64,000 nt of DNA from the NCBI RefSeq assembly GCF_006345805.1, contig NC_043009.1, positions 23,870,001 through 23,934,000 of the forward strand, written 5' to 3'. A program made the position numbers and the translations under genes. Numbering within the stretch: the stretch's first letter is position 1; every line of letters begins with the position of its first letter. The DNA comes from Octopus sinensis. Taxonomy: Eukaryota. Under the pieces are notes generated by a model. It was not told the origin of the DNA, searched no databases, and saw only the letters and a list, made by a program, of their open reading frames with translations. Below, piece by piece: positions 2,906-59,197 of this stretch.

Positions 2906-4131
2906 ACACACACACACACACATATATATATATACACACGAGCAAAACGCCCCCCCACCATCCAATGGACGGTGCTGAACCATATCTGCTGAATAAAAGC
3001 AATCAGTGTTTTCTTTTCATTGAAAACATGCCTTTATTTCAATAAAGTTTTGGGTTTTGTCAAACGAAGTTAAGGCAAAAAAACAAAAACAAATAGTCTT
3101 TCCTTCCTTCATGCTAAATTTGAAGAAAATATCTCTTTTGCATCATAATTTTTAGGTCTTAGATATACTGCATCTTGTGACATTATTTCAAGCCAGCCGG
3201 CTTTTTGCTTGCGCAAACTGCATGTCCAATTTTCTCGCGTACGCGTAGTAACGATCGCAACAGCTGATGTACTTGTGCGTACAAATACACGTGGAGTGCT
3301 CAGTCACTTGTACGTTAAATTCACAAGCAGGCTGTTCCGTTGATCGTATCAACTGGAACCCTCATTATCGTAACCGATTGAGTGCCAGTGCCACCTATGG
3401 ATGCGTTGTTAATAAGTTCATGCGCAGGAAGGGCTGCGTGGCATCTTGGGCGAGTGATTTCTACTATGTCGTCGAATCGACCAATCAGTAAATCTAGGTG
3501 ATAAGTTTAAAAAAAAACGAAAAAACATCGTGTATATGCTTGTGTCTGTCTTTGTGATTGTGTTTGTCATCCCACTACTTCAAACCAGTGTTGGTTTGTT
3601 TATGTCCCCGTAATTTGGCGGGTCGCAAAAGGAAAATGATATAATAAAAATCAGGCTTAAGATAATAAATGCTGGGGTCACTTTGCTCGGCTAAACCACT
3701 TCAAAGCAATGAAAGTAAAAGATAAAAGAAAGACATGAAATTACGAGGTTCCAGGTTCGATTCTATTGCGAGGTAGCGTCATCGGCAAGAATCCCATTCG
3801 AATATATCACAACAAAGTTAGGGTTGTAAGAACGAAATAGTCTTGTCCTTCGTGGATAGCCTTAATGCAAAACAATGCTACAAACCAACACCTAAACCTT
3901 GATACACTCAGAGCACTCTATCGTATTGCAATAATTTGAGCCTAGATCAAACAAATTTCTTTCTTCGTACGCCAAAGAAACTACAAGGCGTATCATGTCC
4001 CCGAACCATTTCTACTTTGTATGTGGTTACGAATTAAAACTTACTTTTGTTTAATTAATTAATGATTTAAATTCATAAAAATGGTAATTCAATTAAAAAT
4101 TAATTATATTCTATTATACATTTACTTAAAG

Positions 4132-7100
4132 GAAAAAAAGGAAATATGAAGAGAGAGGAATCACAGAACAAGGCAATTCGGTTCCAAATAGCCAAAACAG
4201 TTGACAACAAGGCGAAGCTAAATCACTGTTTCAGAATGACGGGAGAAGATTTGAAAGATACTGTAATCGAAATGGGTTGCTTCCATCTTACATTCAAAAG
4301 AAATGCGTTACTGAAAAATATTAAGAGAATGGACAAAGATAATATAATTATTGAGACGTATGATGCTATTGATGATTCTGAAGGCAAAGGAAGATCTGAT
4401 TCTAGTAGATATGGAGGTGATGATGTTGAAAGGAATGTAAGATCTGATCATGGTTATTATGGAAGTGATGATGTTGAAACGAAAGGAAAATCTGATTCTA
4501 GTAGTTATGGAGATGATGATGTTGAACGGAAAGTAAGATCTGATCATGGTTATTATGGAGGTGATGATGTTGAAACGAAAGGAAAATCTGATTCTAGTAG
4601 TTATGGAGATGATGATGTTGAACGGAAAGTAAGATCTGATCATGGTTATTATGGAGGTGATGATGTTGAAACGAAAGGAAAATCTGATTCTAGTAGTTAT
4701 GGAGATGATGATGTTGAACGGAAAGTAAGATCTGATCATGGTTATTATGGAGGTGATGATGTTGAAAGGAAAGTAAGATCTGATCATGGTTATTATGGAG
4801 GTGATGATGTTGAAAGGAAAGTAAGATCTGATAATGGTTATTATGGAGGTGATGATGTTGAAAGGAAAGTAAGATCTGATAATGGTTATTATGGAGGTGA
4901 TGATGTTGAACGGAAAGTAAGATCTGACCATGGTTATTATGGAGGTGATGATGTTGAACGGAAAGTAAGATCTGATCATGGTTATTATGGAGGTGATGAT
5001 GTTGAAGGGAATGTAAGATCTGATAATGGTTATTATGGAGGTGATGATGTTGAAAGGAAAGTAAGATCTGATAATGGTTATTATGGAGGTGATCATGTTG
5101 AACGGAAAGTAAGATCTGATCATGGTTATTATGGAGTGATGATGTTGAACGGAAAGTAAGATCTGATAACGGTTATTATGGAGGTGATGATGTTGAACGG
5201 AAAGTAAGATCTGATAATGGTTATTATGGAGGTGATGATGTTGAACGAAAGTAAGATCTGACCATGGTTATTATGGAGGTGATGATGTTGAACGGAAAGT
5301 AAGATCTGATCATGGTTATTATGGAGGTGATGATGTTGAAGGGAATGTAAGATCTGATAATGGTTATTATGGAGGTGATGATGTTGAAAGGAAAGTAAGA
5401 TCTGATAATGGTTATTATGGAGGTGATCATGTTGAACGGAAAGTAAGATCTGATCATGGTTATTATGGAGGTGATGATGTTGAACGGAAAGTAAGATCTG
5501 ATAACGGTTATTATGGAGGTGATGATGTTGAACGGAAAGTAAGATCTGATAATGGTTATTATGGAGGTGATGATGTTGAACGGAAAGTAAGATCTGATCA
5601 TGGTTATTATGGAGGTGATGATGTTGAACGGAAAATAAGATCTGATCATGGTTATTATGGAGGTGATGATGTTGAACGGAAAGTAAGATCTGATAATGGT
5701 TATTATGGAGGTGATGATGTTGAAAGGAAAGTAAGTTCTGACCATGGTTATTATGGAGGTGATGATGTTGAACGGAAAGTAAGATCTGATCATGGTTATT
5801 ATGGAGGTGATGATGTTGAAAGGAAGTAAGATCTGATAATGGTTATTATGAGGTGATGATGTTGAACGAAAGTAAGATCTGATCATGGTTATTATGGAGG
5901 TGATGATGTTGAACGGAAGTAAGATCTGATCATGGTTATTATGGAGGTGATGATGTTGAAAGGAAAGTAAGATCTGATCATGGTTATTATGGAGGTGATG
6001 ATGTTGAAACGAAAGGAAAATCTGATTGTAGTAGTTATGGATGTGATGCTGTTGAACGGAAAGTAAGATCTGATCATGGTTATTATGGAGGTGATGATGT
6101 TGAAACGAAAGGAAAATCTGATTCTAGTAGTTATGGAGGTGATGATGTCGAACGGAAAGTAAGATCTGATCATGGTTATTATGGAGGAGATGATGTTGAA
6201 CGGAAAGTAAGATCTGATCATGGTTATTATGGAGGTGATGATGTTGAACGGAAAGTAAGATCTGATCATGGTTATTATGGAGGTGATGATGTTGAACGGA
6301 AAGTAAGATCTGATAATGGTTATTATGAAGGTGATGATGTTGAACGGAAAGTAAGATCTGACCATGGTTATTATGGAGGTGATGATGTTGAACGGAAAGT
6401 AAGATCTGATCATGGTTATTATGGAGGTGATGATGTTGAACGGAAAATAAGATCTGATCATGGTTATTATGGAGGTGATGATGTTGAACGGAAAGTAAGA
6501 TCTGATAATGGTTATTATGGAGGTGATGATGTTGAACGGAAAGTAAGATCTGATAATGGTTATTATGGAGGTGATGATGTTGAACGGAAAGTAAGATCTG
6601 ATAACGGTTATTATGGAGGTGATGATGTTGAACGGAAAGTAAGATCTGATAATGGTTATTATGGAGGTGATGATGTTGAACGGAAAATAAGATCTGATCA
6701 TGGTTATTATGGAGGTGATGATGTTGAACGGAAAGTAAGATCTGATAATGGTTATTATGGAGGTGATGATGTTGAAAGGAAAGTAAGTTCTGACCATGGT
6801 TATTATGGAGGTGATGATGTTGAACGGAAAGTAAGATCTGATCATGGTTATTATGGAGGTGATGATGTTGAAAGGAAAGTAAGATCTGATAATGGTTATT
6901 ATGGAGGTGATGATGTTGAACGGAAAGTAAGATCTGATCATGGTTATTATGGAGGTGATGATGTTGAACGGAAAGTAAGATCTGATCATGGTTATTATGG
7001 AGGTGATGATGTTGAAAGGAAAGTAAGATCTGATCATGGTTATTATGGAGGTGATGATGTTGAAACGAAAGGAAAATCTGATTGTAGTAGTTATGGATGT

Positions 7101-10100
7101 GATGCTGTTGAACGGAAAGTAAGATCTGATCATGGTTATTATGGAGGTGATGATGTTGAAACGAAAGGAAAATCTGATTCTAGTAGTTATGGAGGTGATG
7201 ATGTTGAACGGAAAGTAAGATCTGATCATGGTTATTATGGAGGAGATGATGTTGAACGGAAAGTAAGATCTGATCATGGTTATTATGGAGGTGATGATGT
7301 TGAACGGAAAGTAAGATCTGATCATGGTTATTATGGAGGTGATGATGTTGAACGGAAAGTAAGATCTGATAATGGTTATTATGGAGGTGATGATGTTGAA
7401 CGGAATGTAAGATCTGACCATGGTTATTATGGAGGTGATAATGTTGAACGGAAAGTAACATCTGATCATGGTTATTATGGAGGTGATGATGTTGAACGGA
7501 AAATAAGATCTGATCATGGTTATTATGGAGGTGATGATGTTGAACGGAAAGTAAGATCTGATAATGGTTATTATGGAGGTGATGATGTTGAACGGAAAGT
7601 AAGATCTGATCATGGTTATTATGGAGGTGATGATGTTGAACGGAAAGTAAGATCTGATAATGGTTATTATGGAGGTGATGATGTTGAACGGAAAGTAAGA
7701 TCTGATCATGGTTATTATGGAGGTGATGATGTTGAACGGAAAGTAAGATCTGATCATGGTTATTATGGAGGTGATGATGTTGAACGGAAAGTAAGATCTG
7801 ATAATGGTTATTATGGAGGTGATGATGTTGAACGGAAAGTAAGATCTGATAATGGTTATTATGGAGGTGATGATGTTGAACGGAAAGTAAGATCTGACCA
7901 TGGTTATTATGGAGGTGATGATGTTGAACGGAAAGTAAGATCTGATCATGGTTATTATGGAGGTGATGATGTTGAACGGAAAGTAAGATCTGATCATGGT
8001 ATTATGGAGGTGATGATGTTGAACGGAAAGTAGATCTGATCATGGTTATTATGGAGGTGATGATGTTGAAAGGAAAGTAAGATCTGATCATGGTTATTAT
8101 GGAGGTGATGATGTTGAACGGAAAGTAAGATCTGACCATGGTTATTATGGAAGTGATGATGTTGAACGGAAAGTAAGACCTGATAATGGTTATTATGGAG
8201 GTGATGATGTTGAACAGAAAGTAAGATCTGATCATGGTTATTATGGAGGTGATGATGTTGAACGGAAAGTAAGATCTGATCATGGTTATTATGGAGGTGA
8301 TGATGTTGAAAGGAAAGTAAGATCTGATCATGGTTATTATGGAGGTGATGATGTTGAACGGAAAGTAAGATCTGACCATGGTTATTATGGAAGTGATGAT
8401 GTTGAACGGAAAGTAAGACCTGATAATGGTTATTGGAGGTGATGATGTTGAACGGAAAGTAAGATCTGATCATGGTTATTATGGAGGTGATGATGTTGAA
8501 CGGAAAGTAAGATCTGATCATGGTTATTATGGAGGTGATGATGTTGAAAGGAAAGTAAGATCTGATAATGGTTATTATGGAGGTGATGATGTTGAACGGA
8601 AAGTAAGATCTGATCATGGTTATTATGGAGGTGATGATGTTGAACGGAAAGTAAGATCTGATCATGGTTATTATGGAGGTGATGATGTTGAACGGAAAGT
8701 AAGATCTGATAATGGTTATTATGGAGGTGATGATGTTGAACGGAAAGTAAGATCTGACAATGGTTATTATGGAGGTGATGATGTTGAACGGAAAGTAAGA
8801 TCTGATCATGGTTATTATGGAGGTGATGATGTTGAACGGAAAGTAAGATCTGATCATGGTTATTATGGAGGTGATGATGTTGAAAGGAAAGTAAGATCTG
8901 ATCATGGTTATTATGGAGGTGATGATGTTGAAAGGAAAGTAAAATCTGATCATGGTTATTATGGAGGTGATGATGTTGAACGGAAAGTAAGATCTGACCA
9001 TGGTTATTATGGAGGTGATGATGTTGAACGGAAAGTAAGATCTGATCATGGTTATTATGGAGGTGATGATGTTGAAAGGAAAGTAAGATCTGATAATGGT
9101 TATTATGGAGGTGATGATGTTGAACGGAAAGTAAGATCTGATAATGGTTATTATGGAGGTGATGATGTTGAACGCAAAGTAAGATCTGATCATGGTTATT
9201 ATGGAGGTGATGATGTTGAAAGGAAAGTAAGATCTGATCATGGTTATTATGGAGGTGATGATGTTGAACGGAAAGTTAGATCTGACCATGGTTATTATGG
9301 AGATGATGATGTTGAACGGAAAGTAAGATCTGATAATGGTTATTATGGAGGTGATGATGTTGAAAGAAAAGTAAGATCTGATAATGGTTATTATGGAGGT
9401 AATGATGTTGAACGGAAAGTAAGATCTGATAATGGTTATTATGGAGGTGATGATGTTGAACGGAAAGTAAGATCTGATCATGGTTATTATGGAGGTGATG
9501 ATGTTGAACGGAAAGTAAGATCTGACAATGGTTATTATGGAGGTGATGATGTTGAACGGAAAGTAAGATCTGATCATGGTTATTATGGAGGTGATGATGT
9601 TGAAAGGAAAGTAAGATCTGATCATGGCTATTATGGAGGTGATGATGTTGAACGGAAAGTAAGATCTGATCATGGTTATTATGGAGGTGATGATGTTGAA
9701 AGGAAAGTAAGATCTGATCATGGTTATTATGGAGGTGATGATGTTGAACGGAAAGTAAGATCTGACCATGGTTATTATGGAAGTGATGATGTTGAACGGA
9801 AAGTAAGACCTGATAATGGTTATTATGGAGGTGATGATGTTGAACGGAAAGTAAGATCTGATCATGGTTATTATGGAGGTGATGATGTTGAACGGAAAGT
9901 AAGATCTGATCATGGTTATTATGGAGGTGATGATGTTGAAAGGAAAGTAAGATCTGATCATGGTTATTATGGAGGTGATGATGTTGAACGGAAAGTAAGA
10001 TCTGACCATGGTTATTATGGAAGTGATGATGTTGAACGGAAAGTAAGACCTGATAATGGTTATTATGGAGGTGATGATGTTGAACGGAAAGTAAGATCTG

Positions 10101-11236
10101 ATCATGGTTATTATGGAGGTGATGATGTTGAACGGAAAGTAAGATCTGATCATGGTTATTATGGAGGTGATGATGTTGAACGGAAAGTAAGATCTGATAA
10201 TGGTTATTATGGAGGTGATGATGTTGAACGGAAAGTAAGATCTGACCATGGTTATTATGGAGGTGATGATGTTGAACGGAAAGTAAGATCTGATCATGGT
10301 TATTATGGAGGTGATGATGTTGAACGGAAAGTAAGATCTGATAATGGTTATTATGGAGGTGATGATGTTGAAAGGAAAGTAAGATCTGACAATGGTTATT
10401 ATGGAGGTGATGATGTTGAACGGAAAGTAAGATCTGATCATGGTTATTATGGAGGTGATGATGTTGAACGGAAAGTAAGATCTGATCATGGTTATTATGG
10501 AGGTGATGATGTTGAAAGGAAAGTAAGATCTGATCATGGTTATTATGGAGGTGATGATGTTGAACGGAAAGTAAGATCTGATCATGGTTATTATGGAGGT
10601 GATGATGTTGAACGGAAAGTAAGATCTGACCATGGTTATTATGGAGGTGATGATGTTGAACGGAAAGTAAGATCTGATAATGGTTATTATGGAGGTGATG
10701 ATGTTGAACGGAAAGTAAGATCTGACCATGGTTATTATGGAGGTGATGATGTTGAAAAGAAAGTAAGATCTGACCATGGTTATTATGGAGGTGATGATGT
10801 TGAACGGAAAGTAAGATCTGACCATGGTTATTATGGAGGTGATGATGTTGAAAGGAAAGTAAGATCTGATAATGGTTATTATGGAGGTGATGATGTTGAA
10901 AGGAAAGTAAGATCTGATCATGGTTATTATGGATGTGATGATGTTGAAAGGAAAGTAAGATCTGATAATGGTTATTATGGAGGTGATTATGTTGAAAGGA
11001 AAGTAAGATCTGATAATGGTTATTATGGAGGTGATGATGTTGAAAGGAAAGTAAGATCTGATAATGGTTATTATGGAGGTGATGATGTTGAAAGGAAAGT
11101 AAGATCTGACCATGGTTATTATGGAGGTGATGATGTTGAACGGAAAGTAAGATCTGATCATGGTTATTATGGAGGTGATGATGTTGAAAGGAAAGTAAGA
11201 TCTGATCATGGTTATTATGGAGATGATGATGTTTAA
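4132..11236 (+). CDS. Terminal coding exon of gene A: predicted repetitive secreted peptide precursor (unique Cys-loop region + ~143 x SD(H/N)GYYGGDDVERKVR); first exon(s) not found in window
   Basis: Candidate acceptor ttatacatttacttaaag|G at 4131/4132 (phase 1) opens in frame into the 4146 ORF; ~88 non-repetitive codons with three KR sites run directly into the repeat; nine short deletions (10 nt total) break the frame inside the array; TAA at 11234-11236. Confidence 0.7.
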
Positions 11237-11272
11237 AGGAAAGTAATATCTGATCATGGTTATTATGGAGGT
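4395..11272 (+). repeat. 48-bp coding minisatellite, ~143 units (consensus TCTGATCATGGTTATTATGGAGGTGATGATGTTGAACGGAAAGTAAGA)
   Basis: Direct inspection; 4395-11236 plus 10 deleted nt = 142 units + 36 nt; a further degenerate unit follows the stop. Confidence 0.98.
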
Positions 11273-11470
11273 CATAGTATTTGTTGTGGCTATAATAATA
11301 TTCCATCGTCACCCTGAATGTTCTTCGAACTGCTTTTCAAACTTATTATTGTGTATTTCTCACTTTTTTCATTGTCCTTATTATTTTGTTCCAGAAAAAA
11401 TATTGTAATTGTTTTTATTTTTTCTAAAATGGAATACTGTGTAACTTTTTTGAAATTGAAAACTTTTACC

Positions 11471-11476
11471 AATAAA
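11471..11476 (+). terminator. Candidate polyadenylation signal AATAAA for gene A (second at ~11704)
   Basis: AATAAA ~235 nt after the stop; common by chance in AT-rich DNA. Confidence 0.3.
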
Positions 11477-13693: not shown

Positions 13694-15882
13694 CTATGTT
13701 TGACTTTTGCTTTACGTTTGTACAAGTTGGCTCCAAGTCTCACCCAGAGACCTCAGGAGACAACAGGCTGGAAGTTCATGTTGTTATGCCTAGTGTGCCA
13801 TATATTTGGTTTTGTATTTAGTATTGTATTAGTGAATGTCTAAAAGAAACCATACGAAAATTATATTTGTTTTAAAACTTGAGATTACATAGTAAGTATT
13901 TTGCGTAGGATATGAGCAGTTCCCATGAGCACTATCTTTTGAATTTCTGCCATTTTTGGATTTCCTCGTATCTGAGTTAGGTAGCAATCAGCCCCTTTTG
14001 CTATCATTCCCAGGGCACCTATGACAACAGGTATTGTTTTAGTCATCAGGTTCCACATTTTGCTGATTTCTATTTCAAGATCTTTATATTTGCTCAGTTT
14101 TTGGTAGGTCTTCCGATACGTTTATATCGATTGGGACAGTCATATCAATAAGGAGGCATGTTCTTTGTCTGAAGTCTTTCAATATGATGTCTGGCCTATT
14201 TGCATCTATCTTTCTGTCAGTTTGAATGGTGAAGTTCCAGAGGAGTGAGATGTGGTCATTTCCAAGCACTTGAGGTGGTTTGTGTTCCCACCAGTTTTTT
14301 TCATGGGGCAAGTCCAGGCTTTTGCAAATTACCCAGTGAATATATTGTGCAGTTCTATCATGCCTGTTGAGATACTCTGTAGGCGCTAGAAGACTGCACT
14401 TGGAGACAACATGATCAATGGTTTCATTTTGTTGTTGACATACACGACATGTTGGGCTACTGCCGTTCTTTAATATGTTGGCCTGGTAGTTCCTTGTTGG
14501 AAGGCATTGATCTTGAGCTGCTATGATAAATCCTTCTGTTTCAGATTTTAAGCCAGAGGCTATTAGCCATTGATGGGTCAGGGCTTTGTCAACATCTACA
14601 TTATTCGCTCTCTTTGGGTATTTGCCATAGAGAGGTTTTTCTTGCCATTTATCATTCAGAATATCTAAGGCAGCAGATTTAGCACGGGTTTTCATGCGCT
14701 TAGCTTTTTCTGTGCCTGTTTCTTGTATGTCTATCTCTAATTCCGAAATTTGTTGTATTCGGAACTCACTTAGATATTCCTTTGCCTGTTTTGTTACTGA
14801 GTATGATGCTTTCTTGTTTTCATGTTTTGAGACAAGTTTTAACATCCAGTCCTCAGAGTTTTTCAGGTAGGTGTCTAGGCCAATTGTAGCAATCTTCATT
14901 GTTATTGCCAGTTGTAAAAGTCCACGGCCTCCCTCTTTTCTTGGCAGATAAAGTTGTTCTGTATCTGCCTTAGGGTGGTGCATTCTATGCATTGTCAACA
15001 GTTTTCGTATTTTTCTGTCAAGATTACATATTTCAGTAATTGACCAGTCAACAATATTGAAACTGTAAGTCACGACTGGTATGGCTAAAGCATTGATCGC
15101 TTCGATCCTGTTTCTCGCATTCAGCTCTGTCTTGAGTATTGCTCTTACTCTGCGATAACATTCTCTCCTGATCCTTTCCTTCATCACTGAATGCCTTATT
15201 CCGCCTCCTTCAATTACCCCTGGGTCTAACTCTTTTATGACATGTTGCTGGTCAAGGTTAACGTTAGATGTTTCTGTCATTATTCCTTTGATAAAGGTAG
15301 CTTTTGCACATTTATCGAGGCCAAATTGCATTCTGATGTCATCACTGAATTGTTTAACAATCGCTAGTAAGCCCTTGAGTTGTTGGTCATTTTTTGAAAG
15401 AGCTTTAAATCATCCATGTAAATGAGATGATTTATATTTTTATCAAACATTTTGTATCCGTACTGCGCGTCATTGAGCAATTTTGAGAGAGGTATTAAGG
15501 CTAAACAAAAGAGGAGTGGTGATAGTGAGTCACCCTGGAAAATGCCACATGAAATTTTTACATCACCAGCATTTAGAGATTCATTGTCACTGCTCAAAGA
15601 TAGTGTGGTTCTCCATGATCTCATACTTAGAGACAGAAAGTTTCGCAGAGTAGGTGCTATTTTATACATTTCCAGGCATTTCTTAATCCAGCTATGTGGT
15701 AGGCTATCAAAAGCCTTTTTATAGTCTATCCAGGCTATTGATAAGTGTTTGTGTCGTTTGTGACAATCTTTTAAGATCATCTTATTGATGAGTAGTTGAT
15801 CTTTACAACCAAAGGATCCACGTTTGATCCTTTCTGTCCATTAGGGAATATGTTGCTGTCTGTTAAAAAACAGATGTTAGCG

Positions 15883-15883
<1 letters not shown>
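13694..15883 (-). mobile_element. 5'-truncated R4/Dong-type LINE (family A): RT C-part, CCHC knuckle, REL endonuclease
   Basis: GIFQGDSLSPLLF, YMDDLK, CRVC...ETIDHVVSKC, RHD, NRPDI...LIDMTVP motifs in ORFs 15364-15780 and 14084-15331; both ends in (TAA)n. Confidence 0.92.
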
Positions 15884-15944
<61 letters not shown>

Positions 15945-16107
15945 TATTATCATTCTTCTTCTTCTTCTTCTTCTTCTTCTTCTTCTTCTTCTTCTTCTTC
16001 TTCTTCTTCTCATTATTATTATTATTATTATAATTATTATTATTATTATCATTATTATTATTATCACCATCATCATCATCAGTATTATTATTATTATTAT
16101 TATTATT

Positions 16108-16981
16108 CTATGTTTGACTTTTGCTTTATGTTTGTACAAGTTGGCTCCAAGTCTCACCCAGAGACCTCAAGAGACAACAGGTTGGAAGTTCTGTGCCATA
16201 TATTTGGGTTTTTTTTTTTTTTGGTGTTGTACTAGTGAATGTCTAATACATAAAAATAAAATTAAAAAAAAAAAAATAAAATAAAATAAATAAATAAATA
16301 AATAAAAGTTTGTTTTAAACCTTGGGATTACATAGAGAGTATTTTGCGTAGGATATGAGCAGTTCCCATGAGCACTATCTTTTGAATTTCTGCCATTTTG
16401 GGGTTTCCTGGTATCTGAGTTAGGTAGCAATTAGTCCCTTTCGCTATCATTCCCAGGGCACCTATGACAACAGGTATTGTTTTAGTCTTCAGCTTCCACA
16501 TTTTGCTGATTTCTATTTCAAGATCTTTATATTTGCTCAGTTTTTGGTAGGTCTTGACAGATACATTTATATCGATTGGGACAGTCATATCAATGAGGAG
16601 GCATGTTCTTTGTCTGAAGTCTTTCAATATGATGTCTGGTCTATTTGCATCTATCTTCCTGTCAGTTTGAATGGTGAAGTTCCAGAGGAGTGAGATGTGG
16701 TCATTTTCAAGCACTGGAGGTGGATTGTGTTCCCACCAGTTTTTTTCATGGGGCAAATCCAGATTTTTGCAAATTACCCAGTGAATATATTGTGCAGCTC
16801 TATCATGCCTGTTGAGGTACTCTGTAGGTGCTAGAAGACTGCATTTGGAGACAACATGATCAATGGTTTCATTTTGTTGTCGGCATACACGACATGTTGG
16901 GCTACTGCCGTTCTTTAATATGTTGGCCTGGTAGTTTCTTGTTGGTAGGCATTGATCTTGAGCTGCTATGATAAACCCCTC

Positions 16982-24812: not shown

Positions 24813-27800
24813 CTCATTTTATGACTACGAAGATGACTCATTTTATGACTACGAAGATGACTAATGAGTCCACAGACGTTGCATGTCAGCATCAAAGGAA
24901 GACCCTTCCCATCTGCCCTTCCTGACATCCCTCCTTACTTTCTCATGTGCAACTCGAGATTTCTCAAACGTGGCTGTTCCCTCATGCACAATCCTTCTCC
25001 ACCTGCTACGATCAATAGCTATGCCTTCCCATGTGTCAGGAGAGATGCAAGCATCTCTCAAGGAAGCCTTCAGCAAGTCCTTATACCTCTTTTTTGGTTT
25101 ATGTGGAGGTCGTTCTCATTTAGCTAACTCTCCATCAAAGAGTTGTTTTGGCATCCTTGAATCCTTCATTCTGACCAGATGACCACTCCATCTGAGCCTT
25201 TGCTTTAACATAAGAGCTTCTATACCTTCACGTCAGCCTTCGAGTATTTCAAGATCACTGATGCGGTCCTTCCACTTAATGCTATAGATCCGTCTGAGGC
25301 ACATCTGATGGAAACGTTCCAGATGTTTAAGGTGGTATCGATATGTGAACCACCTCTCGCAGACATAGAAAAGAGAAGGGAGCACACATGCCTTGTACAC
25401 CTTTATCTTTGTCTTTCTGCATATGTCTCGCCGACTCCAGAGGCGCTTTTCTAGCCTTCCGAAAGCAACACTTGCTTTCCTAATTCTATATGGAATTTCA
25501 TCATCCACATTGCCATATCTATTAATAGTGCTTCCCAGGTAGACAAACTGATCGACTACATCAAGTCGTTTACCATTCACATAGATATTTGGTACACTAT
25601 ACTGCTTACCAGGGGCAGGTTGATGCATGACAACAGTTTTCTTGAGATTGACTGTCAATCCTAAGGCAATGCAAGCATCAGAGAATGCATTCAAAACGTG
25701 TTGCATATCAATCTCTATGTGCGCTACTAGCTCACAATCATCAGCATACAAAAGGTCTCTTATGATAGAGGTAAATATCTTTGTTTTTGTAGCAAGGCGC
25801 CTGATAATAAATATGCTGCCAGAGGTTCGATAATGGACGTAAACACCGTATCTGCCGTTTCTGAATGCAATACAGAACACCATCGCGAAATATATGGAAA
25901 ATAGGGTCGGTGCCAGAATATCCCCCTGTTTCACTCCATTTTGTATTGAAATGGGCTCCGACATATTCCCTCTAACATTCACCCTACCATTCATGTCTTC
26001 ATGAAAAGACCTAACCAAAGCAAGGAACTTTTCAGGACACCCAAGTTTCTGGAGGACTTTCCACAATGCTTTTCTATTGACGGTATCAAAGGCTTTTGTC
26101 AGATCGACAAACACCTGATACAAATCCAGACCCTGTTCCACACACTTTTCCTGGAGCTGTCTAGCTGAAAAGATCATATCAGCAGTGCCACGTCCCACAC
26201 GAAAGCCAGATTGACTTTCTGGAAGAACACAATCTGCAATGTATTTCAGCAGACGATCCAGGAGGATCCTGCATAAAACCTTTCCTACAGCAGACAGCAA
26301 TGATACTCCCCTATAATTACCACAATTATTCCTGTTGCCCTTTACAGGACCACCATTACTGCATCTCTCCAGTCTTCAGGTACAGATTCACTAGTCCATA
26401 CCTTACCAAACAAAGAGTGAAGTTTCTGCAGAATTTTCTCACCACCATGCTGTAACAACTCCGCATGTATGCCATCCATACCCGGAGACTTCCCATTATT
26501 CAACCTTGTGACAGCCATTGCAACTTCTTCCAACTTTGGTAGTTCTGCGAGTGCTGCTTTCACAGGCAATCCAGGGATGAGATTGAGAACATCCTCACTA
26601 ACTACAGACTGCTAATTCAAAAGTTCATCAAAGTGTTCTTGCCACCTTCGCAGAATTCCTTGTGAATCACGAAGTTCTTTACCATCCCTGCTTCGAATTA
26701 GTGTCATCAGGGAAGACGTTGGTCCATAAACTTCTCGCAAGAGACCATACAACAGCTTTGTGTTATTGGAATTTGATGCCGCCTGTATCTCGTCAGCCTT
26801 CTTACTCCACCACGTATCCCTCATCCGAGAGAGCTTTTGCCCCACACGTGATTTTACGTCCTTAAGTTCCCTATGCAACACTTCCCTTTCCTGTGACTTT
26901 GCTGACAAATAGCGTGACAAAGTACGCCTTTTATCAGCCACTAAATCATCTATATGTTCATCATTTTCTTTGAACCAATCTTGATGCTTTCTTTGTATCA
27001 ATCTCAGAACTTTCTTGCCTATATCATAAACTGAGCTTTTAAGGGTCGACTAATCCTCCCCAATATCTGCAGCATTCATTTCCCCTCGTAAAGTTCTCTT
27101 CACACTATTATACCTGAGACGATCAAAATTCAGTCTTTTAGGCAGGGTCATCCCTGCAGCTCGGATTTTATGTTTTGTGACTAATTTCACTTTTGCACGT
27201 ACTAGGCGGTGGTCAGTCCAACACTCAGCTCCACGAAGAACACGAACACACTGCACATCCTTGTCTATCACGCACCCTAACTAGGATGTAATCCAGAATA
27301 TGCCATTCTTTAGATGCAGGGTACATCCATGTAGTCTTAAGCTTATTCTTTTGTTGAAACATGGTATTGGTAACACACAGACTCAGCTCCTCACACATCT
27401 GCAGCAAAAGCATGCCATTACTTTTACACTTCCCCACCCCATGCTTCCCAATCACAGTCCATGTGTTAAAATCCCTATCCACTCTAGCATTAAAGTCACC
27501 CAGTACGATGACTTTGTCTGCCCGAGGGATATTTCTTATAATACCCTTCAAAGCATGGTAGAAAGAAAGTTTTTCGTCATCAGTATAGCACATAGTTGGA
27601 GCATACACACTCACCAAGGTCATATAATTTCCTTTAGACAAAGGAATTCTCATGGACATAAGACGCTCATTAATTCCGATTGGGAATTCTTCCAACTTGT
27701 CCACAAGAGTAGTCTTAACAGCAAATGCCACTCCAGCTTCTCCTCTAAGCTCTTCATCTCTCCCTTTCCAAATGAATGTATATTTTCCACAAGTTTCTAT

Positions 27801-31149: not shown

Positions 31150-31910
31150 ACAAACTCACATACAAATTCCGCCGAGGTCGACTTTACCTTTCATCGTTTC
31201 GAGGTTGATAAAATAGGTACCAGTTGTGTGCTGGGTTCTATGTAATCGACTGTCCTCTCCCTCCAAATTTCACGCCTTGTGCCTACAGCAGAAAGGATTA
31301 TTACGATTATTAAGGCGGTGAGCTGGCAGAACCGTTAGCACGCCGGGCGAAATGCGTATCCGTATTTCGTCTGCCGTTACGTTCTGGGTTCAAATTCCGC
31401 CGAGGTCGACTTTGCCTTTCATCCTTTTGGGGTCGATAAATTAAGTACTATTTACGCACTGGAGTCGATATAATCGACTTAATCCGTTTGTCTGTCCTTG
31501 TTTGTCTCCTCTGTGTTTAGCCCCTTGTGGGTAGTAAAGAAATAGTTATTTCGTCTGCCGCTACGATCTGAGTTCAAATTCCGCCGATGTCGACTTTGCC
31601 TTGAATCCTTTCGGGGCCGATTAAATAAGTACCAGTTACGCACTGGAGTCGATATAATCGACTTACTCCCTTTGTCTGTCCTTGTTTGTTCTCTCTATGT
31701 TTAGTTCCTTGTGGGCAGTAAATAAATAAGAAATAAAAATGGTTAGCTCGCCGGGCGAAACTCAGCAGTATTTACCCTGTCTTTACGTTTTGAGTTCAAA
31801 TTGCACCGAGGGACGACTTTGCCTTGAATCCTTTCGGAGTCGATAAATTAAGTACCAGTTGTGTATTCCAAAATTTCGAGCCTTATGCCTAGAGTAGAAA
31901 AGATTATTAT
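31150..31910 (+). mobile_element. Tandem cluster of four SINE family 1 copies
   Basis: Repeated caaattccgccgaggtcgactttgcc...ggggtcgataaattaagtacc blocks; full copy 31314-31545. Confidence 0.88.
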
Positions 31911-34425: not shown

Positions 34426-36904
34426 ATATAAAAGGTGGCTGATCGTTTTGCCGTAACATTTATATCCGCATCCAGTTCTATTTAGCATATCAGATAGAGG
34501 TGACAGTGCCAAGCAGAAAAGGAGTGGCGAGAGAGTGTCTCCCTGGAATATTCCTCTTCTAATGGGGATGGCTTTGGTTTACATGAGTCCCTCTTTTGTT
34601 TGGAGCTGTAGCACGGTTTGCCATTTATTCATAGAGTGCCCTATGAAATTTATAAGGGTTGGTGCTACTTTGTTAATGGCTAGTGTTTCGACGATCCATG
34701 TCTGGGCGATGCTATCAAACGCCTTTTTGAGGCCTTTCTTCTTTCTGTGGCTGTCTTCAGTTATGGCTTTATTAATCATTAGTTGATCTTTACAGCCATA
34801 TGAGCCTTTGCGGCATCCTTTCTGCTCTTCTGGAAACAGGTTGTTTTCGTCCAGGTGCTTGTCCAACCTTTGCGATATTACTGCAGTAAGTGCCTTGTAT
34901 ATTGTAGGGAGACAGGTTATTGGTCTGTAGTTTTCTGGTTTTGCTGTCTCATTTGACTTGGGAATTAAGATGGTTTTCCCCTTCGTGAGCCATTCAGGCA
35001 TTGTCTCTGGCTCTGCCAGTATGTTGTTAAAGTTTTCAGCCAGCTTTTTGTGCATTCCTGTTAGATATTTCAACCAGAATTTGGGGATCTTGTCATGCCC
35101 AGGTGCCTTCCAGTTGCTTAGTCTTTGCAGTGCCTGGGTGACCTCTTCAGTTGTTATGGGGGTCCAAAGTTGCTCAGATGCTGAGTTTGTTGTTTTGACA
35201 CTTCTTTTTTTTTTGGTTGTTCGTTCGCCGACCATATTTCTCTCCATAATTCTTCCACTTCTGCCGTTGGTGCTGCAGTGATTTCTATTTTATTTTTATT
35301 TTTGCCAAGTTCTTGGTAGAACTTTTTGGGGTTGGAGTTGAACTTTTTTTTTTGTTCAAAGAAGCGCTGGCGTTTCTCGTACCGGCGGATATCTTGCTTC
35401 AGCGTTTCTTTTATCTCAGATAAATCTTTTTCTGTGATGTTATATTTTCGGAGTATTTTTGTTTTCTTTTTGTTGCTCAGTAGCGTTGATTGTCTACTGA
35501 TTTCATTAAGAATCGACAGATCTTTTCTCATTTTTTGTATTTTGTTTTGGATGTTATTTATCCACAGGGTTTGTTTGGGTGGTGGTACTCCTGTTTGGAT
35601 GGGTTTGAGTGAGTATCCAGCTTCTTTTGTGGCTGCAGTGGCTGCTGCGTATACTAAGTCATCTAGCTTAGTGATATCGCTTTTTGTTTCAGTGGCTATT
35701 AGTTCAGTGACGGCTAGGTTTATGCTGTTTATAATTGGTGTTGTTGTTTCGTCTATTTTGATTTTTGGGAGATATGGTCGGTGGTCCATTTTGAGCTCTG
35801 TGGTTTTCAGTTCTTTGATTATTTTACTTTTTATATTATCATAATCATTAGGCTCCCCTTTGTTGTCTCTAGGTTTTAGATTTGTGTCGCTTTCTTTCTT
35901 ATTTATATGTTTGTTTGCCGTGTTTTGGCTTGCTGTTTGTCGTGTATTATTATGCATCCTCACGGTCTGGGTTTGTTGTTTTTTTATTTATATCGTTTTT
36001 GTTGGGAATGTTACGTTTGTCATCGTGTTTTATTGTTTCAGTGTTTATATTAATGGGCATCGTTGTGTGGCTTCTATCTACATTTTCCTGGTGTATTTTT
36101 TCTTTTAGATGTTCTATTTCTATTTCTGATATTTATTTTGCTTTGAGAATGTACCTTCGTACGTTAGCTATTTTATTAGGGTTCATTGCTGTATCCAAGT
36201 CTTTATTTATGTTATTTTCCTTCCATATTTTATATGTATGTGTTGTTGTGTTTACATTTTTGGGGTAGAGCACTGCTGTGAAGTATGCGTGCAGGATAGA
36301 AATGTATTCCTCACGTGTCCATTTATGTCTTTTGGGTTTTATCTGCGAGACATGAGGAACAACGTCCGGCCCATTATTTTGACGGTCGTCATTTTCGTAG
36401 GGTACCGGTCCTTTCATTTCTGTTGTCACATTGTTTTGCACGTGTAGTTTTTCGTACATTTTGTGTTGTAAGTTTAAGGTACGTACTTCCAGAATGTTAA
36501 TCTTGGGTTGAATAATATCGGTGGTATTTGATTTCTTTGTAGTTCCTTTGTACATAGTGTTTAGGGTTGGGGATGATCTGGTGTTGATTGATCGTAATGT
36601 TTCACGCATGTTTACATGTGTTGTGTTAGAGGTGGAGATGACATCGAGTCAAAATACATCATTTCGTTTCGAAAATAGTAATAAATTTTAATGAGCATTA
36701 CTTACTCGGGTACAGTCCAATCCTTTGTTAGTAAACCTTTGGTTTCATACGATGTCCTTGTTTTCGATGTTTGCGGATAGATTTCAGAGCTCTGTTGTAT
36801 CGTTCTTACATCTTAAACGTCCCCCGGTGTTCTCTCTTAAACGTCCCCCGGTGTTCTCCTTATTATTATTATTATTATTATTATTATTGTTATTATTATT
36901 ATCA

Positions 36905-49647: not shown

Positions 49648-52600
49648 ATTTCTATTCCTGAGCGCCATACTAATACATTTGTTTGTTTGTACTCCACCTG
49701 CCTTCGTCTTTTGCTTATTTTCGTAAACCTTTCCGTTATATATCACGCGCTCACGTGGTCTCAATTTTATCCTATATTCTACCACTACCACTACCAACTC
49801 TTACTTTTCCTCGACGGACACTAACCTCTCCATTGAATTTTTTTACCTCTAAGAACACCTACCCTCTGGCTGCACTTCTCCTACACGGATCAAAGTGACT
49901 TTGTTATTGATGTGAAATCCTTGAAATACACCACGACGTTTACACTTTTAACCTTGAACTTGTTCGTAAAAACTGTCTCTTTCGTTTTCATTTTTTTCAT
50001 TTTATTTTTCTCATATATTATTTTTTTACATTCATTTCATACTTTCCACACTTCCTGTATTTTTTGTCCTTTCTATCGCCTCTTCCTTCTCTGGATGTCC
50101 ATACTCTGTTCTCTCTGCTTGCACCCGCTTATTTTTGCCTCCTTCTGTCTCTCTGCTTCCTTTCTTTTCTTTTCTTTTCTTTTTCTATTTGTCCCATTTT
50201 CTTTGCCTTTATTTTATGCTTCTACCGCCTTTTTTTTATCTAGTTTTTTTCTCTCTTTTTTTTCGCGATTCCACCATGCCGGATTATAAATCCTACCTCC
50301 TCACTCTCCACCATCGTCTGAAAGATTACCTCTGCTTACTTCCTTCCAAAAGCTTTCAGCCGTCCATTAACCTCTCTCTTCTCCTTTTAAAAAAAAACCC
50401 GCTTCTCTAGCCACGTCTCTTTTCTAAGCCGCTGCCTACATCACCGCCTCATCCCTAAAGGTTTCCGCTTCCATTTCCACCCTGCTCTCCACTCTGCTTC
50501 ATCCATCCTACCGCCTTATGCGTGCCACCATTCGCTCCAATCTCTCTAAACTACATACCATCGACTGCATTCTCCCTCCTGCTTTTTCCATCTTTTTCTC
50601 CTCTCTGCCGCCCTCCATGCTCAAAACACGTTGCGCTTCATTATCTATTTAAATCACCTCTTTCATCAATTTCTTTCCAATACCAAACTTCGTAAACTCC
50701 AATCACTCCTCTATTCCATCACACCCGACGCCACTACCCCAACTCCTCTACTACCCTTCTCCCCCCCGATAGGCTCCACTCACCCACACCTAAACCCACT
50801 GTCCCTCATAACAACCCCCCACACACCTCCCCACTCCCTCTCCCTCAGACCTCCACCAGCCCTACCAGCCCTCCTACTCCTATTTCATCCACGCCTCCTA
50901 CTTCTATTCGATCCACCCCTTCTCCACTTCAGTCTGTTATTACGATTCCTCCAGACCTTCCCCTCTCTGCGGCGGAACGCTCCGTCTTCAGTAGGGGTCT
51001 GCGTTTCATCCCCCTCACTCCATCCTGTAAGAAATTCCAGACGCGTGCTGATGTCAACAGCTTTGTGCGCCGCGACCGGTTGGGTGCGTTTTTCCGCGAC
51101 ATACCACCCACACCCAACGAGGAGGACTGCTTCACTGACCTGGGCCGCCGACGATCCCAGTGGACGCCTGCCCCCGGCCAGTTCCAAGCAGTGGATCTTT
51201 TCGCGGGTGCCTGTCAGCGCGCGTTGGAGCGGTTCAATTTCTCCAGGCGCCACCGCCGCCTCAACATCTCCCCGGCCGAGCTCTCGGCTCTTCGTTCCCT
51301 CCGACGGCGCACTGACATTGTCAACAAACCGGCCGACAAGGGTGGAGCTGTGGTGGTGTGGAGCGCGGACCTCTACAGGGCCGAGGCGTTCCGCCAACTC
51401 AATGACACCTCCTTCTACTTCCCTCTGCCCTCTAACCCCACACGTAGCTACCAACAGACGGTATCCTCTACTGTCCGCGACCTCATCTCGTCCTCCCGTC
51501 TCCCCCGCACCGCATCCAACCTAATTGTGCGAACCCCACGTACCCCCACCATTTACTTCCTCCCCAAAATCCCCAAACCCAACAACCCTAGCCGCCCCAT
51601 CGTCTCCGCCTGTAACTGCCCCACGGAGCTCATCTCAAAATATCTCGACCGTGTCCTTGCCCCCCAAGTGGTGTCTCTTCCCTCTCACATCTACGACACC
51701 AACCATGCTATCCGGCTTTTCAACTCTTTCTTCTTTCTTCCCGGCTCCTCCAAACTCCTCTTTACAATGGACATCTAGAGCCTCTATACCGTCATCCCTC
51801 ACCACGAAGGACTGTGGGCACTTCAACACTTTCTCGACCTCCGCCCCAACCCCGAACCCGACACCTCTACACTCATTCTTCTGGCCGAACTTGTCCTTTC
51901 TCTTAACTGCTTCTCGTTCGCGGGCGAGTTCTACCAAAAGGTCTCGGGAGTGGCCATGGGAACGCGAATGGGCCCCAACTACGCGAACCTGTTCGTTGGC
52001 TATGTTGAGGCCAAATATTCTTTAGTTTCATTGGTCCCACTCCCGAACTATACGGTCATTACATTGAAGACATTATCGGTGCCACCTCACTCTCCCGTGA
52101 ACATCTAGACTCCTTCCTCTCTTTCGTTTAATCCTTCCATCCTGGCCTCCACTTCACCTGCACTATCTCCAACACCTCTGTCTCCTTCCTCGACATTTCG
52201 GTCAGCATTCATCACTCCACTCTTACCCTCCATCACGACAAACACCAGCCTCAAACACCACCCTCACACTCATCTAAAACTTCTTTCTCCCCTCTCTCTC
52301 CCTCTCCCTCTCCCGTCTCCTCCCTCCCCTACCTCTCCTCTCCCTACCTCTCATCCTCTCCTACCTCTCTCCTCCCCTTACTCTCTCCGCTCCCCCTACC
52401 TCTCCTCCTCTCTCTACCACTCCCCTCCTCTCCGCCGTCCGCTCCCCCACCTCCTCTCCTCCTCTCCCTCCTTCTCCTCCTCTCCCTTCTTCTCCTCCCC
52501 TCCCTTCTTCTCCTCATCTCCCCCTCCTCCCCATCTTCTCTCCCCCTCCCCTCTCTTCTCTCCCCCACTCACTGTCCCCACAACCACCACTTTACCCCAA

Positions 52601-53202
52601 CCCCCAGCCGAACCCACACCCCACTTGGGCTTTCCCCACTCTCGCCCACCTCCTTACCACATCACTCCACACTACACTACACCATACAACTTTACACATC
52701 ACATCACAACACCCCCACAGCACACCGCCCACACACCCATCCCCACATCTTTACACCTACACATACATACACATATCACATCACAACACAACACCCACAC
52801 ACCCATCCCCACATCTCCACACCCACACATACATACATACATACACACGTCCCGACCACCAGCCCTCTTTCACACGCAAATACATACTCTCTTATACACA
52901 CACGCACCTTTATGTTGGGGGCACCTTCGTTTTGGAAGTCACTTGACCCTGTTATCTCCCCTACTGTCTCTCTAGTGTCTGACCTCTGACCTCTGCCCGA
53001 AGTCAGAACACAATGATAGATCGTTAGCTCCTACACGCATTTTTTCTCTCCTTGTTTCTCTCCTTGTTTGTTTTCTGTGTATCATTCTGTCGAAGAGCGT
53101 AGGCTCGAAACGTAAAATCTTGTTCTATTTCTATTCCTGAGCGCCATACTAATACATTTGTTTGTACTCCACCTGCCTTCGTCTTTTGTTTATTTTCGTA
53201 AA
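49648..53202 (+). mobile_element. Penelope-like element (Neptune-type RT, family P2) with direct terminal repeats; no GIY-YIG visible
   Basis: IPKGF N-terminal motif, KPADKGGAVVV, RPIVS, TMDI.SLY, GVAMGTRMGPNYANLFVG; 49648-49730 repeated at 53125-53202. Confidence 0.88.
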
Positions 53203-56989: not shown

Positions 56990-58836
56990 ATAGCGAGAGA
57001 TTTACGAAAAGAACAAAAGACGAAGACAAGTGGAGTACAAAACAAACAGATGTATTAGTATAACGCTCAGGAATAGAAAAAGTATTTTACGTTTCGAGCC
57101 TACGCTCTTCTATGGAAAGGGACAGAGAAAAAAAACGAGGAGAGAAACAAGGAGAGAAAAAATGTGTATAGTAGCTAACGATCTATCATGGCGACTGACT
57201 TCGGACAGAAGGGTCACACTCGAGAGCGAAGAAGTAGGAGAGATAACAAAGTAAAGATGACACCCAACACAAAGGTGCGTGTGTGTATAAGAGAGTAGTG
57301 TGCCTGTATGTATGTGTAGGTGTGAAAATGTGGGGATGGGAATTGGTCAGTGCTAGTGTGTGGGTGGTGTGTCGTGATGTGATGTGTAATGTTGTATGGT
57401 GTGGTGGCGAGCTGGCAAAAACGGTAGCACGCCGGGCGAAATGCGTAGCCGTATTTCGTCTGCCGTTACGTTCTGAGTTCAAATTCAGCCGAGGTCGACT
57501 TTGCCTTTCATCCTTTCGGGGTCGATTAAATAAGTACCAGTTATGCACTGGGGTCGATATAATCGACTTAATCCTTTTGTCTGTCCCTGTTTGTCCCCTC
57601 TGTGTTTAGCCCCTTGTGGGTAGTAAAGAAATAGTGGTGTGATGTTGTTGGGAGGTGGTGGGAGGCGAGAGTGGGGAAATCACGGGTGGTGTGTGTGTTC
57701 GGCTGAGGGTTGGAGTAGAGTTGGGATATGTGGGTAGGCAGAGGGTGAGGGTAGAGGTGGGGTATGTGGGAGAGGGTGTGAGGGATAGGATGGAGTATGG
57801 ATTGGGGGATGGGATGGGGAGATGGGAAGGATAGGGATGGTGGAGTAGGAATGTGTAGGGGTGGGTGGGCTTATGGGGAGGGTTGATAATGAAGGGAGAA
57901 GGGGAAGGTGGGTATGTGAGGAGAGAGATGAAGAGAGAAGAGAGAAAGAGAGGGTGAAAAAATAAGAGAGAAGAGAGAAAGAGAGTAAGAGAAGAGAGAG
58001 AAAGAAAGAAGAGAAAAAGACAGTAAGAGAGAAGAGGGAAAGGGAGTAGGGGTGAAGAGAAGTAGAAGTGAAGAGAAGTAGGAGTGAAGAGAAGTAAAAA
58101 TCGGGACAAGAGAGGAAAGTTGTGTGGGAGGAAGTAGGAGGGAGGGGAAGAGAGGAAAGGGGAGGAGGTTAGATGAAGAGGGGAGGAGAGTTGAGCCCAA
58201 ATGGCGTAAACGAGCGAAGAGAGAAGATTAATCCCTGTTTGAAGGAGGCGAGGAGTCGGTTAGGGAAGATGTGTGAAGTGGACGGGTCGGACTGGAGATG
58301 GCGGAAAGCTCGGAGAATGGTGCGTTGGAGAGGTAGGGTGGTGGGGTCGTAGGTGAGGGGAAAAAGGAGGCGGGAGACTGCAGGGCGGGTTCGGGGGGAG
58401 AGAGAGCAGATGCACGGTCTACAGAACTTGCTCTGGCAAGGGCGGTGTGGACAGTGGTGAGGGGATATCCACGTAGGATGAAGTGGCGAGCCATGAGTTG
58501 AGACTGAGTCTCAAAGTCATGGTCATCACTACAGAGCCTACGTAGACGGAGGAATTGGGAATAGGGGATGGAAAGCTTGGTGTGTTTGGGGTGGGAGGAA
58601 GAGAAGTTGAGGTATGAGTGTGAGTCTGTGTGTTTGTAGTGGATGGATGTGGTAAGAGTGGAGTGATGAATGCTGACCGAAATGTCAAGAAAGGAGACAG
58701 AGGTGCAGTAGAAGTGAAGGGCAGGATGGAAAGATTTGACAAAAGAGAGGAAGGAGTCTAGATGTTTGCGGGAGAGCGAGGTGGCACCGATACAGTCGTC
58801 AATATAACGGCCCTATAGTTCGGGAGTGGGACCAAT

Positions 58837-58845: not shown

Positions 58846-58875
<30 letters not shown>

Positions 58876-59160: not shown

Positions 59161-59197
<37 letters not shown>

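Follow-up and report, generated by a model that had tools for sequence, protein, structure and literature searches.

Among secreted proteins built from many copies of a short unit, two strategies are known: peptide polyproteins and repetitive biomaterials. The first is represented by multi-copy precursors cut by convertases, such as the neuropeptide precursors of molluscs and cnidarians, which hold tens of copies, the antimicrobial multipeptide precursors of insects, Ustilago Rep1 (cut by Kex2), nematode polyprotein antigens and profilaggrin. The second includes the Tyr/Gly-rich materials of marine animals, e.g., the decapeptides of mussel foot protein-1, the GHGxY repeats of squid beak His-rich proteins, suckerins, and Gly/Tyr- and Asp-rich shell matrix proteins. 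Here we describe a locus of Octopus sinensis whose design lies between the two. It is a tandem array of 48-bp units in a stretch of 64,000 nucleotides (RefSeq assembly GCF_006345805.1, contig NC_043009.1, positions 23,870,001 to 23,934,000 of the forward strand), hereafter the window. Most probably, this array makes up the coding part of a single, very large exon in a conserved, Octopus-specific gene, LOC115218617 in O. sinensis and LOC106876298 in Octopus bimaculoides. That the array is translated as a giant secreted repeat protein we consider highly probable; for the fuller statement, that this protein is both made and cleaved into peptides, we would give a probability of about 0.42.

Like the multi-copy precursors, the gene combines a signal peptide with short head-to-tail units and a conserved R-x-x-R at the unit boundaries, by which the product would be multiplied per messenger RNA (mRNA). 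Unlike them, it has no Gly for amidation and no canonical KR or RR, places Val at P2, and pairs a fast-evolving "peptide" half with a conserved, folded N-terminal domain. To our knowledge, the copy number of the octopus array is several-fold above that of any animal precursor. With the Tyr/Gly-rich marine materials it shares the great length and uniformity of its short-repeat array, a high content of Gly and Tyr together with His, predicted secretion, and a composition that is kept over sequence. It differs from them in the lack of sequence similarity and of any Pfam match, in being far more charged and in its regular R-x-x-R motifs; moreover, an octopus has no shell. The gene is already known, only as two truncated, uncharacterised models, and is a member of no named family. 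Both public models represent this gene and agree with it in signal peptide, N-terminal domain and unit reading frame, yet they hold 2–9 units versus about 143 here, and the former name of the O. bimaculoides protein, "stress protein DDR48-like", reflects composition only.

The array, which is itself far beyond chance, was placed by Tandem Repeats Finder (TRF) at window positions 4370–11272, with a period of 48, 144.0 copies, 94% matches and a score of 12140. Segmentation unit by unit from 4395 gave 136 units of 48 bp, four of 47 and three of 46, plus one degenerate unit beyond the stop. The consensus TCTGATCATGGTTATTATGGAGGTGATGATGTTGAACGGAAAGTAAGA translates as SDHGYYGGDDVERKVR, and the plus frame reads SD(H/N)GYYGGDDVERKVR, with SDHGYYGGDDVE encoded by 81 units and SDNGYYGGDDVE by 36. 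Tyr occurs twice and Gly three times in each unit, alongside four acidic and three basic residues, and the unit ends in R-x-V-R, after which Ser follows. The ending RKVR is found in 121 units, and Arg occupies both R13 and R16 in 127 of the 142 units before the stop. Variant unit pairs (…VETKGK/SDSSSYG…) are located close to the 5′ end and at two internal positions, and recent duplications of blocks of 7 and of 14–15 units are visible inside the array. No extra copies of the 48-mer were found in the sequence examined around the locus, which amounts to 89 kb in O. sinensis and 37 kb in O. bimaculoides.

A protein search with the unique part of the open frame returned a single match at 100% identity, the NCBI entry "uncharacterized protein LOC115218617 [Octopus sinensis]" of 238 amino acids (aa; P0001). 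The gene lies on chromosome CM016871.1 of assembly GCA_006345805.1, and window coordinates equal the coordinates of the locus sequence L001 minus 25266. Using tblastn of P0001 on L001, we rebuilt the 238-aa model exactly from five exons with canonical splice sites. An earlier note on this DNA had proposed a plus-strand coding exon with a phase-1 acceptor at 4131. This acceptor (AG at 4130–4131, the codon C/GA being split between exons 3 and 4) is real, since no start of exon 4 other than 4132 reproduces the NCBI model exactly. The features of the gene, all on the plus strand and in window coordinates, are the following:

-15265 to -15175 (L001 10001–10091), plus strand: exon 1 with the signal peptide, 15 kb upstream of the window (model reconstruction).
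-2492 to -2322 (L001 22774–22944), plus strand: exon 2, upstream of the window (model reconstruction).
1417–1488 (L001 26683–26754), plus strand: exon 3 (…FRTLTFLRNDRFFNVIHINGKLLAR), preceded by the acceptor TTTTTTCAACCAG and followed by the donor GTAAGT (model reconstruction).
4132–4500, plus strand: exon 4 of the NCBI model (model reconstruction).
4132–4394, plus strand: unique part opening the large exon, in which the conserved N-terminal domain finishes (…NKAIRFQIAKTVDNKAKLNHCF.MTGEDLK…MGCFHL) and decayed proto-units follow (…ETYDAIDDSEGKGR).
4395–11272, plus strand: 48-bp (16-codon) tandem array of 144 units (segmentation starting at 4395).
4501–11394, plus strand: "intron" of the NCBI model, almost the whole array, with the weak donor TCTA/GTAGTT and the acceptor TTGTTCCAG.
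5115–8466, plus strand: span of the seven units short by 1 or 2 bases (10 in total), starting at 5115, 5210, 5785, 5832 (2), 5878, 7989 (2) and 8419 (AT).
11234–11236, plus strand: TAA that closes the restored frame, a GAA>TAA change in the last unit but one (sequence reading).
11395–11408, plus strand: last exon of the NCBI model, coding KKIL and a stop (model reconstruction).
11471–11476, plus strand: AATAAA polyadenylation signal, ~235 nt past the TAA, kept in O. bimaculoides (ccaataaatgcaca).

Exon 1 encodes MKSVTVAYVLFVMLSCLTIAYS, read from the sequence as a typical signal peptide; although it lies outside the window, it bears out the secretory product that the earlier note had expected. 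The 88 unique residues with three KR sites (MKRE, FKRN and IKRM) described there are indeed present at 4132–4394, and the announced size of about 143 units and ~2,370 aa after repair of short deletions agrees with our count, as the large exon codes for 2,371 residues once 10 bases are restored. Beyond the TAA, the frame passes through one further decayed unit and an in-frame tail (…GHSICCGYNNIPSSP) to a second stop, TGA at 11315–11317.

We take the comparison with O. bimaculoides, whose lineage split from that of O. sinensis ~34 My ago (PMC10700109), to be the informative part of the case for coding. An exhaustive HMMER search covering 1.84 billion representative proteins found two other proteins only, the O. 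bimaculoides orthologue and a weak starfish match; the latter aside, the orthologue is the sole relative of this orphan gene found there. It corresponds to LOC106876298 (P0002/P0006; E 5e-95, 70% identity), with isoforms of 305, 289 and 273 aa. The first 164 residues, up to GCFHL, are 85% identical between the species, and the signal peptide MKSVTVAYVLFVMLSCLTIAYS shows a single difference, I19L. Over these first 164 codons, the ratio of non-synonymous to synonymous divergence (dN/dS) of the N-terminal domain is 0.32 at a dS of 0.205, and the non-coding flanks are 79–86% identical, a divergence close to that dS. The gene is therefore alive.

Right after the shared …MGCFHL, O. bimaculoides continues with 16-residue units SYDGSYGGDNVERNVR in the same frame as O. 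sinensis. In assembly GCA_001194135.2, pieces of the 48-bp array are found at L002 20210–20474 and 26449–26685, separated by a gap of 5,957 N, which gives an array span of ~6.5 kb (the gap size being an estimate, as gap sizes vary in the locus) versus 6.9 kb in O. sinensis; this ~6-kb gap is the reason why the O. bimaculoides models (273–305 aa) are truncated. The frame closes at a TGA, after RSGRSC, exactly where the array ends on its 3′ side; the poly(A) signal, too, is conserved. In both species the array starts in frame inside the exon and closes with a stop at the array edge, the period is a multiple of 3 (48 bp = 16 codons), and the frame is continuous with the exon (in O. sinensis, from the acceptor at 4132). 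The two public models disagree at the 3′ end; read as one large exon, the gene has an identical architecture in both species. The orthologue with its equal period, frame and stop at the array end backs the claim of the earlier note that the array is coding and not a satellite.

As for the unit itself, S1, G4, Y6, G7, G8, D9, V11, E12, R13, V15 and R16 are kept between the species, and five positions have changed from O. sinensis to O. bimaculoides (2 D>Y, 3 H>D, 5 Y>S, 10 D>N and 14 K>N). In both species a unit still has two Tyr, two Arg and a net charge of about -1, one Tyr moving from position 5 to position 2. Both R13 and R16 are present in 10 of 11 whole O. bimaculoides units, where the boundary reads RNVR/S.

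In the O. bimaculoides isoforms, 5′ units are fused in register with 3′ units over the N gap, and the isoforms differ by steps of exactly 16 aa; this is possible because each unit holds GGAG/GTGAT…TATGGAG/GT, i.e., a canonical-looking GT..AG pair exactly one period apart. Such register-shifted isoforms suggest, but do not prove, that transcript evidence carrying units stands behind them. Across window 4395–11272, GGAG/GTGAT is found in 124 units and pairs with TATGGAG one period on, and AAA/GTAAGA, near the donor consensus GTAAGT of the real introns of the gene, is found in 119 units. With GT..AG pairs one period apart, any whole number of units is removable with canonical dinucleotides; if these pairs were used in vivo with the acceptor at 11394, products of variable length could arise. 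At the gap edge, the O. bimaculoides contig ends in an inverted unit fragment (TCTTACATTCCTTTCAACATC, reverse-complementary to GATGTTGAAAGGAATGTAAGA; L002 20470–20490), which probably arose as an artefact where the assembly collapsed the repeat. Downstream of the array, the post-stop frame of both species leads through a decayed unit to a shared tail, …GHSICCGYNNIPSSP versus …GHTNCYGDKKIPSSP, each closed by a stop (window 11237–11317; L002 26701–26815). This tail is reached past different stops, a TAA inside a unit in O. sinensis and a TGA in a 30-bp truncated unit in O. bimaculoides, and its nucleotide identity, roughly 83% by eye, is not above that of the flanks; the ancestral C-terminus may have been …IPSSP.

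The restored protein comprises 2,482 aa (~280 kDa without the signal peptide; isoelectric point 5.1). It opens with a cleavable signal peptide, continues with an N-terminal domain of ~140 residues that has four conserved Cys, and then runs through ~143 units of 16 residues. The mature protein is composed of 18% Asp, 17% Gly, 11.5% Val, 11.4% Tyr and 11.3% Arg; Asp+Glu amount to 24% and Arg+Lys to 18%. The repeat chain is predicted to be intrinsically disordered. Pfam searches with the protein, the isolated domain and eight units gave nothing at threshold. Two sub-threshold candidates were set aside: Fibrinogen_BP, which reached 23 bits on the eight units against a cut-off of 50 and reflects the 16-residue period, and DUF6805, which is noise. 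Using phmmer, residues 138–184 of P0001 were matched to a starfish protein of five DUF4773 (PF15998) domains with an E-value of 1.2e-5, which is inflated because the five repeats of the matched protein are near-identical. The pairwise alignment extends over ~140 residues, that is, the whole octopus N-terminal domain including its …GCF.I/L.F ending, with a BLASTP E-value of 0.07, and the Pfam model of DUF4773 matched neither P0001 nor P0006 nor the isolated domain even at E up to 10; we thus do not assign the gene to DUF4773. A true DUF4773 protein from a different gene, A0A0L8GLC6 (OCBIM_22032142mg), is present in O. vulgaris skin mucus and falls with senescence (P0003; PMC11431876 supplement) and may be distantly related to the N-terminal domain described here.

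No similarity to reflectin, suckerin, the beak His-rich proteins or other named cephalopod repeat proteins was detected with Pfam and the exhaustive HMMER search. With Pfam silent and NCBI naming the protein "uncharacterized", the earlier impression that it belongs to no known cephalopod family holds. A word-indexed protein search with the unique part and units returned the NCBI model only and missed the orthologue, and with a pure unit profile its candidate list was saturated without a scoring match. AlphaFold2 on P0001, with a two-sequence alignment, gave a mean predicted local distance difference test score of 35.7 and an unusable model.

Furin-type proprotein convertases, which reside in the trans-Golgi of animal cells, recognise as their minimal motif R-X-X-R followed by a small polar residue. 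The best-conserved feature of the array is R-x-V-R followed by Ser at each boundary, which corresponds to the minimal R-X-X-R form only. We propose that the chain, led by its signal peptide, would enter the endoplasmic reticulum as an intrinsically disordered polypeptide and be cut by furin-type convertases of the trans-Golgi after R-x-V-R at most unit boundaries. One mRNA could then give rise to roughly 130 copies of a 16-mer that is anionic and rich in Tyr, and removal of the last Arg by a carboxypeptidase would leave the 15-mer SD(H/N)GYYGGDDVERKV, ending in …ERKV. Such a peptide would rather be a bulk secreted product than a hormone. Among the elements of this proposal, cleavage is the most conditional, ahead of translation of the whole array.

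The cleavage sites named by the earlier note fared unevenly: the R-x-x-R spacing is kept between the species, in contrast to the dibasic RK, which is RN in O. bimaculoides. The 12-mer ending in VE that the note had expected needs a second cut at that R-K, and we therefore dropped it; a cut after R-x-V-R would yield the 16-mer, or the 15-mer after trimming. The three KR sites were likewise dropped as cleavage sites because they are not conserved, O. bimaculoides having MKT at the first and lacking the FKRN/IKRM stretch. In a bolder version, which we hold only tentatively, one 7-kb exon of an Octopus-restricted orphan gene would release ~130 convertase-cut 15/16-mers, by far the top copy number among animals, as a bulk secretion of an octopus gland, the peptides being possibly Tyr-sulfated or cross-linked and the array hidden so far by long-read errors and an assembly gap.

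Several observations weigh against translation and cleavage as proposed. The NCBI model of O. sinensis treats the array as an intron, and the deposited frame is interrupted (seven units lack 1–2 bases, leaving five pieces of open reading frame, ORF). The context of the sites is weak for furin, with Val at P2, Glu at P5 and Asp or Tyr at P2′. Within the unit, the would-be "peptide" half is the least conserved (SDHGYY vs SYDGSY), and it is the motif half, GGD.VER.VR, that is kept; this is the reverse of what a receptor-binding peptide would show, and also of a polyprotein, in which the peptide is more conserved than the spacers. The conserved, folded N-terminal domain and the 1:1 ratio of Tyr to Arg would fit an intact material-forming protein equally well, and ~130 copies would exceed any animal peptide precursor known to us. 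We found no mention of LOC115218617, LOC106876298, the XP accessions, DDR48 in connection with octopus, or the peptide strings in the searchable literature, and the gene and these strings are absent from the supplements of the O. vulgaris skin-mucus proteome and of the O. sinensis gonad transcriptome, both of which use such gene ids. OctoPartenopin (PMC7460285) was rejected as unrelated, since it concerns calponin repeats.

Selection tests inside the array belong to the same side of the balance. The earlier note had argued from synonymous variants, and all those listed are present (CGG/AGG in 41 units and GAT/GAC in 22, as well as AAC, GGC, GGA, GTC, CGC, GTT and AGA). Nevertheless, the argument fails: 9 of 38 substitution types are synonymous, which equals the neutral expectation of 0.22–0.28, although this within-array test is weak because selection can hardly see a change that affects a single unit out of 143 redundant ones. 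Unit variation no more synonymous than under neutrality is formally the very result that the note itself had named as speaking against its reading. Counted by occurrences in a six-frame test within the array, two other frames are as "synonymous" as the proposed one; the counts of the common unit variants stem from block duplication and are not independent events. Between the species, the unit consensus shows 2 synonymous and 6 non-synonymous changes (omega ~0.8, from too few sites).

The strongest competitor keeps the same gene and the same giant translated exon and lets the protein stay intact as a secreted material. We regard it as a serious possibility, and within the translated reading we rank cleavage slightly above it. 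Here the chain would be a disordered polyampholyte in which Tyr and Arg "stickers" are spaced by Gly, Ser and Asp, leading to coacervation, cross-linking (di-Tyr, His-catechol) or binding of mineral or chitin. The N-terminal Cys domain would serve assembly or anchoring, and the product could be a cement of egg stalks or capsules, a cuticle lining or a constituent of mucus. What is kept between the species is composition rather than sequence, which fits this idea, as do the Tyr and Arg shares of the mature protein, the purifying selection on the N-terminal domain with its four conserved Cys, and the poor furin context (P2 Val, acidic P5 and P2′). The size and uniformity of the repeat are typical of structural secreted proteins, and sticker-and-spacer materials, too, favour Arg over Lys. 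Yet Arg at positions 13 and 16 has been kept for ~34 My at exact spacing and with Ser next to it, although Lys would preserve the charge; a disordered chain with ~127 R-x-x-R/S motifs must cross a trans-Golgi rich in convertases, and the protein is similar in sequence to no known structural family.

Should the array be translated, more than 90% of a ~280-kDa secreted protein kept for at least 34 My in Octopus is absent from two reference annotations, and the locus would show how uniform coding arrays are lost to assembly gaps, to base-run errors of long reads and to GT..AG pairs inside repeats. Whether cleaved or intact, the product would be new for cephalopod biology, being either a bulk secreted peptide or a Tyr/Arg/Asp-rich material of interest for adhesion and coacervates. 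The unit yields the ideal tryptic peptides SDHGYYGGDDVER and SDNGYYGGDDVER.

Another explanation, which we consider unlikely, is that the NCBI model is right: the array would be spliced out from 4501 to 11394, the gene would give a 238-aa secreted product with about two units, and the rest would be an intronic minisatellite born from the exon. The annotated model P0001 exists, the acceptor TTGTTCCAG/A at 11394 looks good, donor-like AAA/GTAAGA stands in 119 units, and the units carry no signal of selection. However, the donor CTA/GTAGTT at 4501 is poor, as the three other donors of the gene are all GTAAGT; the motif TCTA/GTAGTT recurs at 4593, 4689, 6123 and 7179. In O. bimaculoides the models read the units on both sides of the gap as coding sequence and end with a stop on the edge of the array, leaving the counterpart of the 11394 acceptor and its exon unused, and the period, frame, length and stop position of the array have been kept across ~34 My. 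A gene finder that meets frameshifts must either splice or truncate. We think that the 4501–11394 intron is a modelling work-around for a broken frame and not a real intron, and that the 238-aa model is truncated because 10 bases are missing from the PacBio-based O. sinensis assembly.

Those missing bases raise the question whether the O. sinensis gene is a pseudogene, or polymorphic for one, with seven real frameshifts and translation ending at 5157. We judge this improbable, marginally more so than the intron of the NCBI model. The plus frame is open from 4104 through the 88 unique residues into the array up to the first missing base, after which the uncorrected frame meets a stop at 5157–5159; the raw frame comes as five ORF pieces (4104–5156, 5245–5826, 5913–8030, 8023–8439 and 8417–11233). 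This raw stop and the neutral look of the unit variation would suit a pseudogene. The changes, clustered at 5115–5256, 5785–5924, 7989–8034 and 8419–8464, are all deletions with no insertion, and all 10 bases fall inside GG, AAA, TT, AA or TATTAT runs. They are singletons: no deletion was copied into a sister block, in contrast to substitution types, 25 of 38 of which are present in several units. Units 10–16 and 17–23 differ by no substitution and two one-base gaps, and units 25–39 and 47–61 by two substitutions and four gaps, all of them in one copy; these two cleanest duplicated block pairs thus show 2 mismatches versus 6 one-base gaps over 1,055 bp. Short-read polishing is known to work poorly within uniform arrays. 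PacBio reads underlie the O. sinensis assembly (Li et al., 2020, cited in PMC10700109). Because the deletions are confined to base runs and shared with no sister block, and because the assembly is PacBio-based, they are probably long-read consensus errors rather than real frameshifts. Moreover, the N-terminal exons and their splice sites are intact, the N-terminal dN/dS is 0.32, and no stop-creating substitution is found in 142 units. The ~10 O. bimaculoides units, from Illumina data, contain no frameshift, a sample too small to count.

Finally, openness of the frame was rejected as evidence for coding. The plus frame has no internal stop in the 142 restored units, but with 36 substitution types, and with stops arising from 8 of the 144 possible changes, the chance of this is ~0.13; three of the six frames of the consensus unit are open, the antisense frame SYFPFNIITSIITMIR being likewise stop-free over 142 units. 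This openness, the absence of a synonymous excess and a window crowded with simple repeats are what a non-coding minisatellite abutting the exon would show, its open frame being an accident of a stop-free unit, a reading that is very improbable given that the unit already lies within the accepted coding sequence in the annotations of both species, that a 16-codon period, an in-frame start inside the exon and a closing stop recur in both, and that the surrounding 89 kb hold no other copy of the 48-mer.

The rest of the window is extremely rich in microsatellites, with 132 TRF rows. A (TCA)n microsatellite of ~119 copies at 801–1156 lies in the intron just 5′ of exon 3 and is flanked by (TTC)n and (TCT)n (758–802 and 1155–1204); the minus-strand poly-Asp/Glu ORFs over it are mechanical artefacts. 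A C/T-rich low-complexity block at 50000–53000 (GC content 0.47–0.52, GC skew -0.4) is mirrored by a G/A-rich one at 57000–60000 (skew +0.3 to +0.5), and both contain many degenerate repeats of 18–52 bp and long accidental ORFs. The segment 42075–42174 consists of exactly 100 N, an assembly gap. We recognised no cellular gene besides LOC115218617 in the window, and ARAGORN found no tRNA genes there.

Fragments of non-long-terminal-repeat retrotransposons with RVT_1, Exo_endo_phos and zf-RVT domains and broken ORFs are located on the minus strand at 14084–16756, 25233–27731 and 34579–36609. In turn, at 59983–62069 (minus strand), a 542-aa reverse-transcriptase ORF is followed by a 153-aa ORF with a weak GIY-YIG match (E 8e-4); such an order is that of Penelope-like retroelements, and the copy looks fairly intact. 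The motif GAGTTCAAATTCCGCCGAGGTCGACTTTGCC is found in eight plus-strand copies with at most five mismatches (12356, 12627, 31158, 31386, 31570, 34276, 38435 and 57475), two of which sit in a 184-bp tandem duplication at 31363–31728, and it looks like the conserved core of a short interspersed nuclear element.

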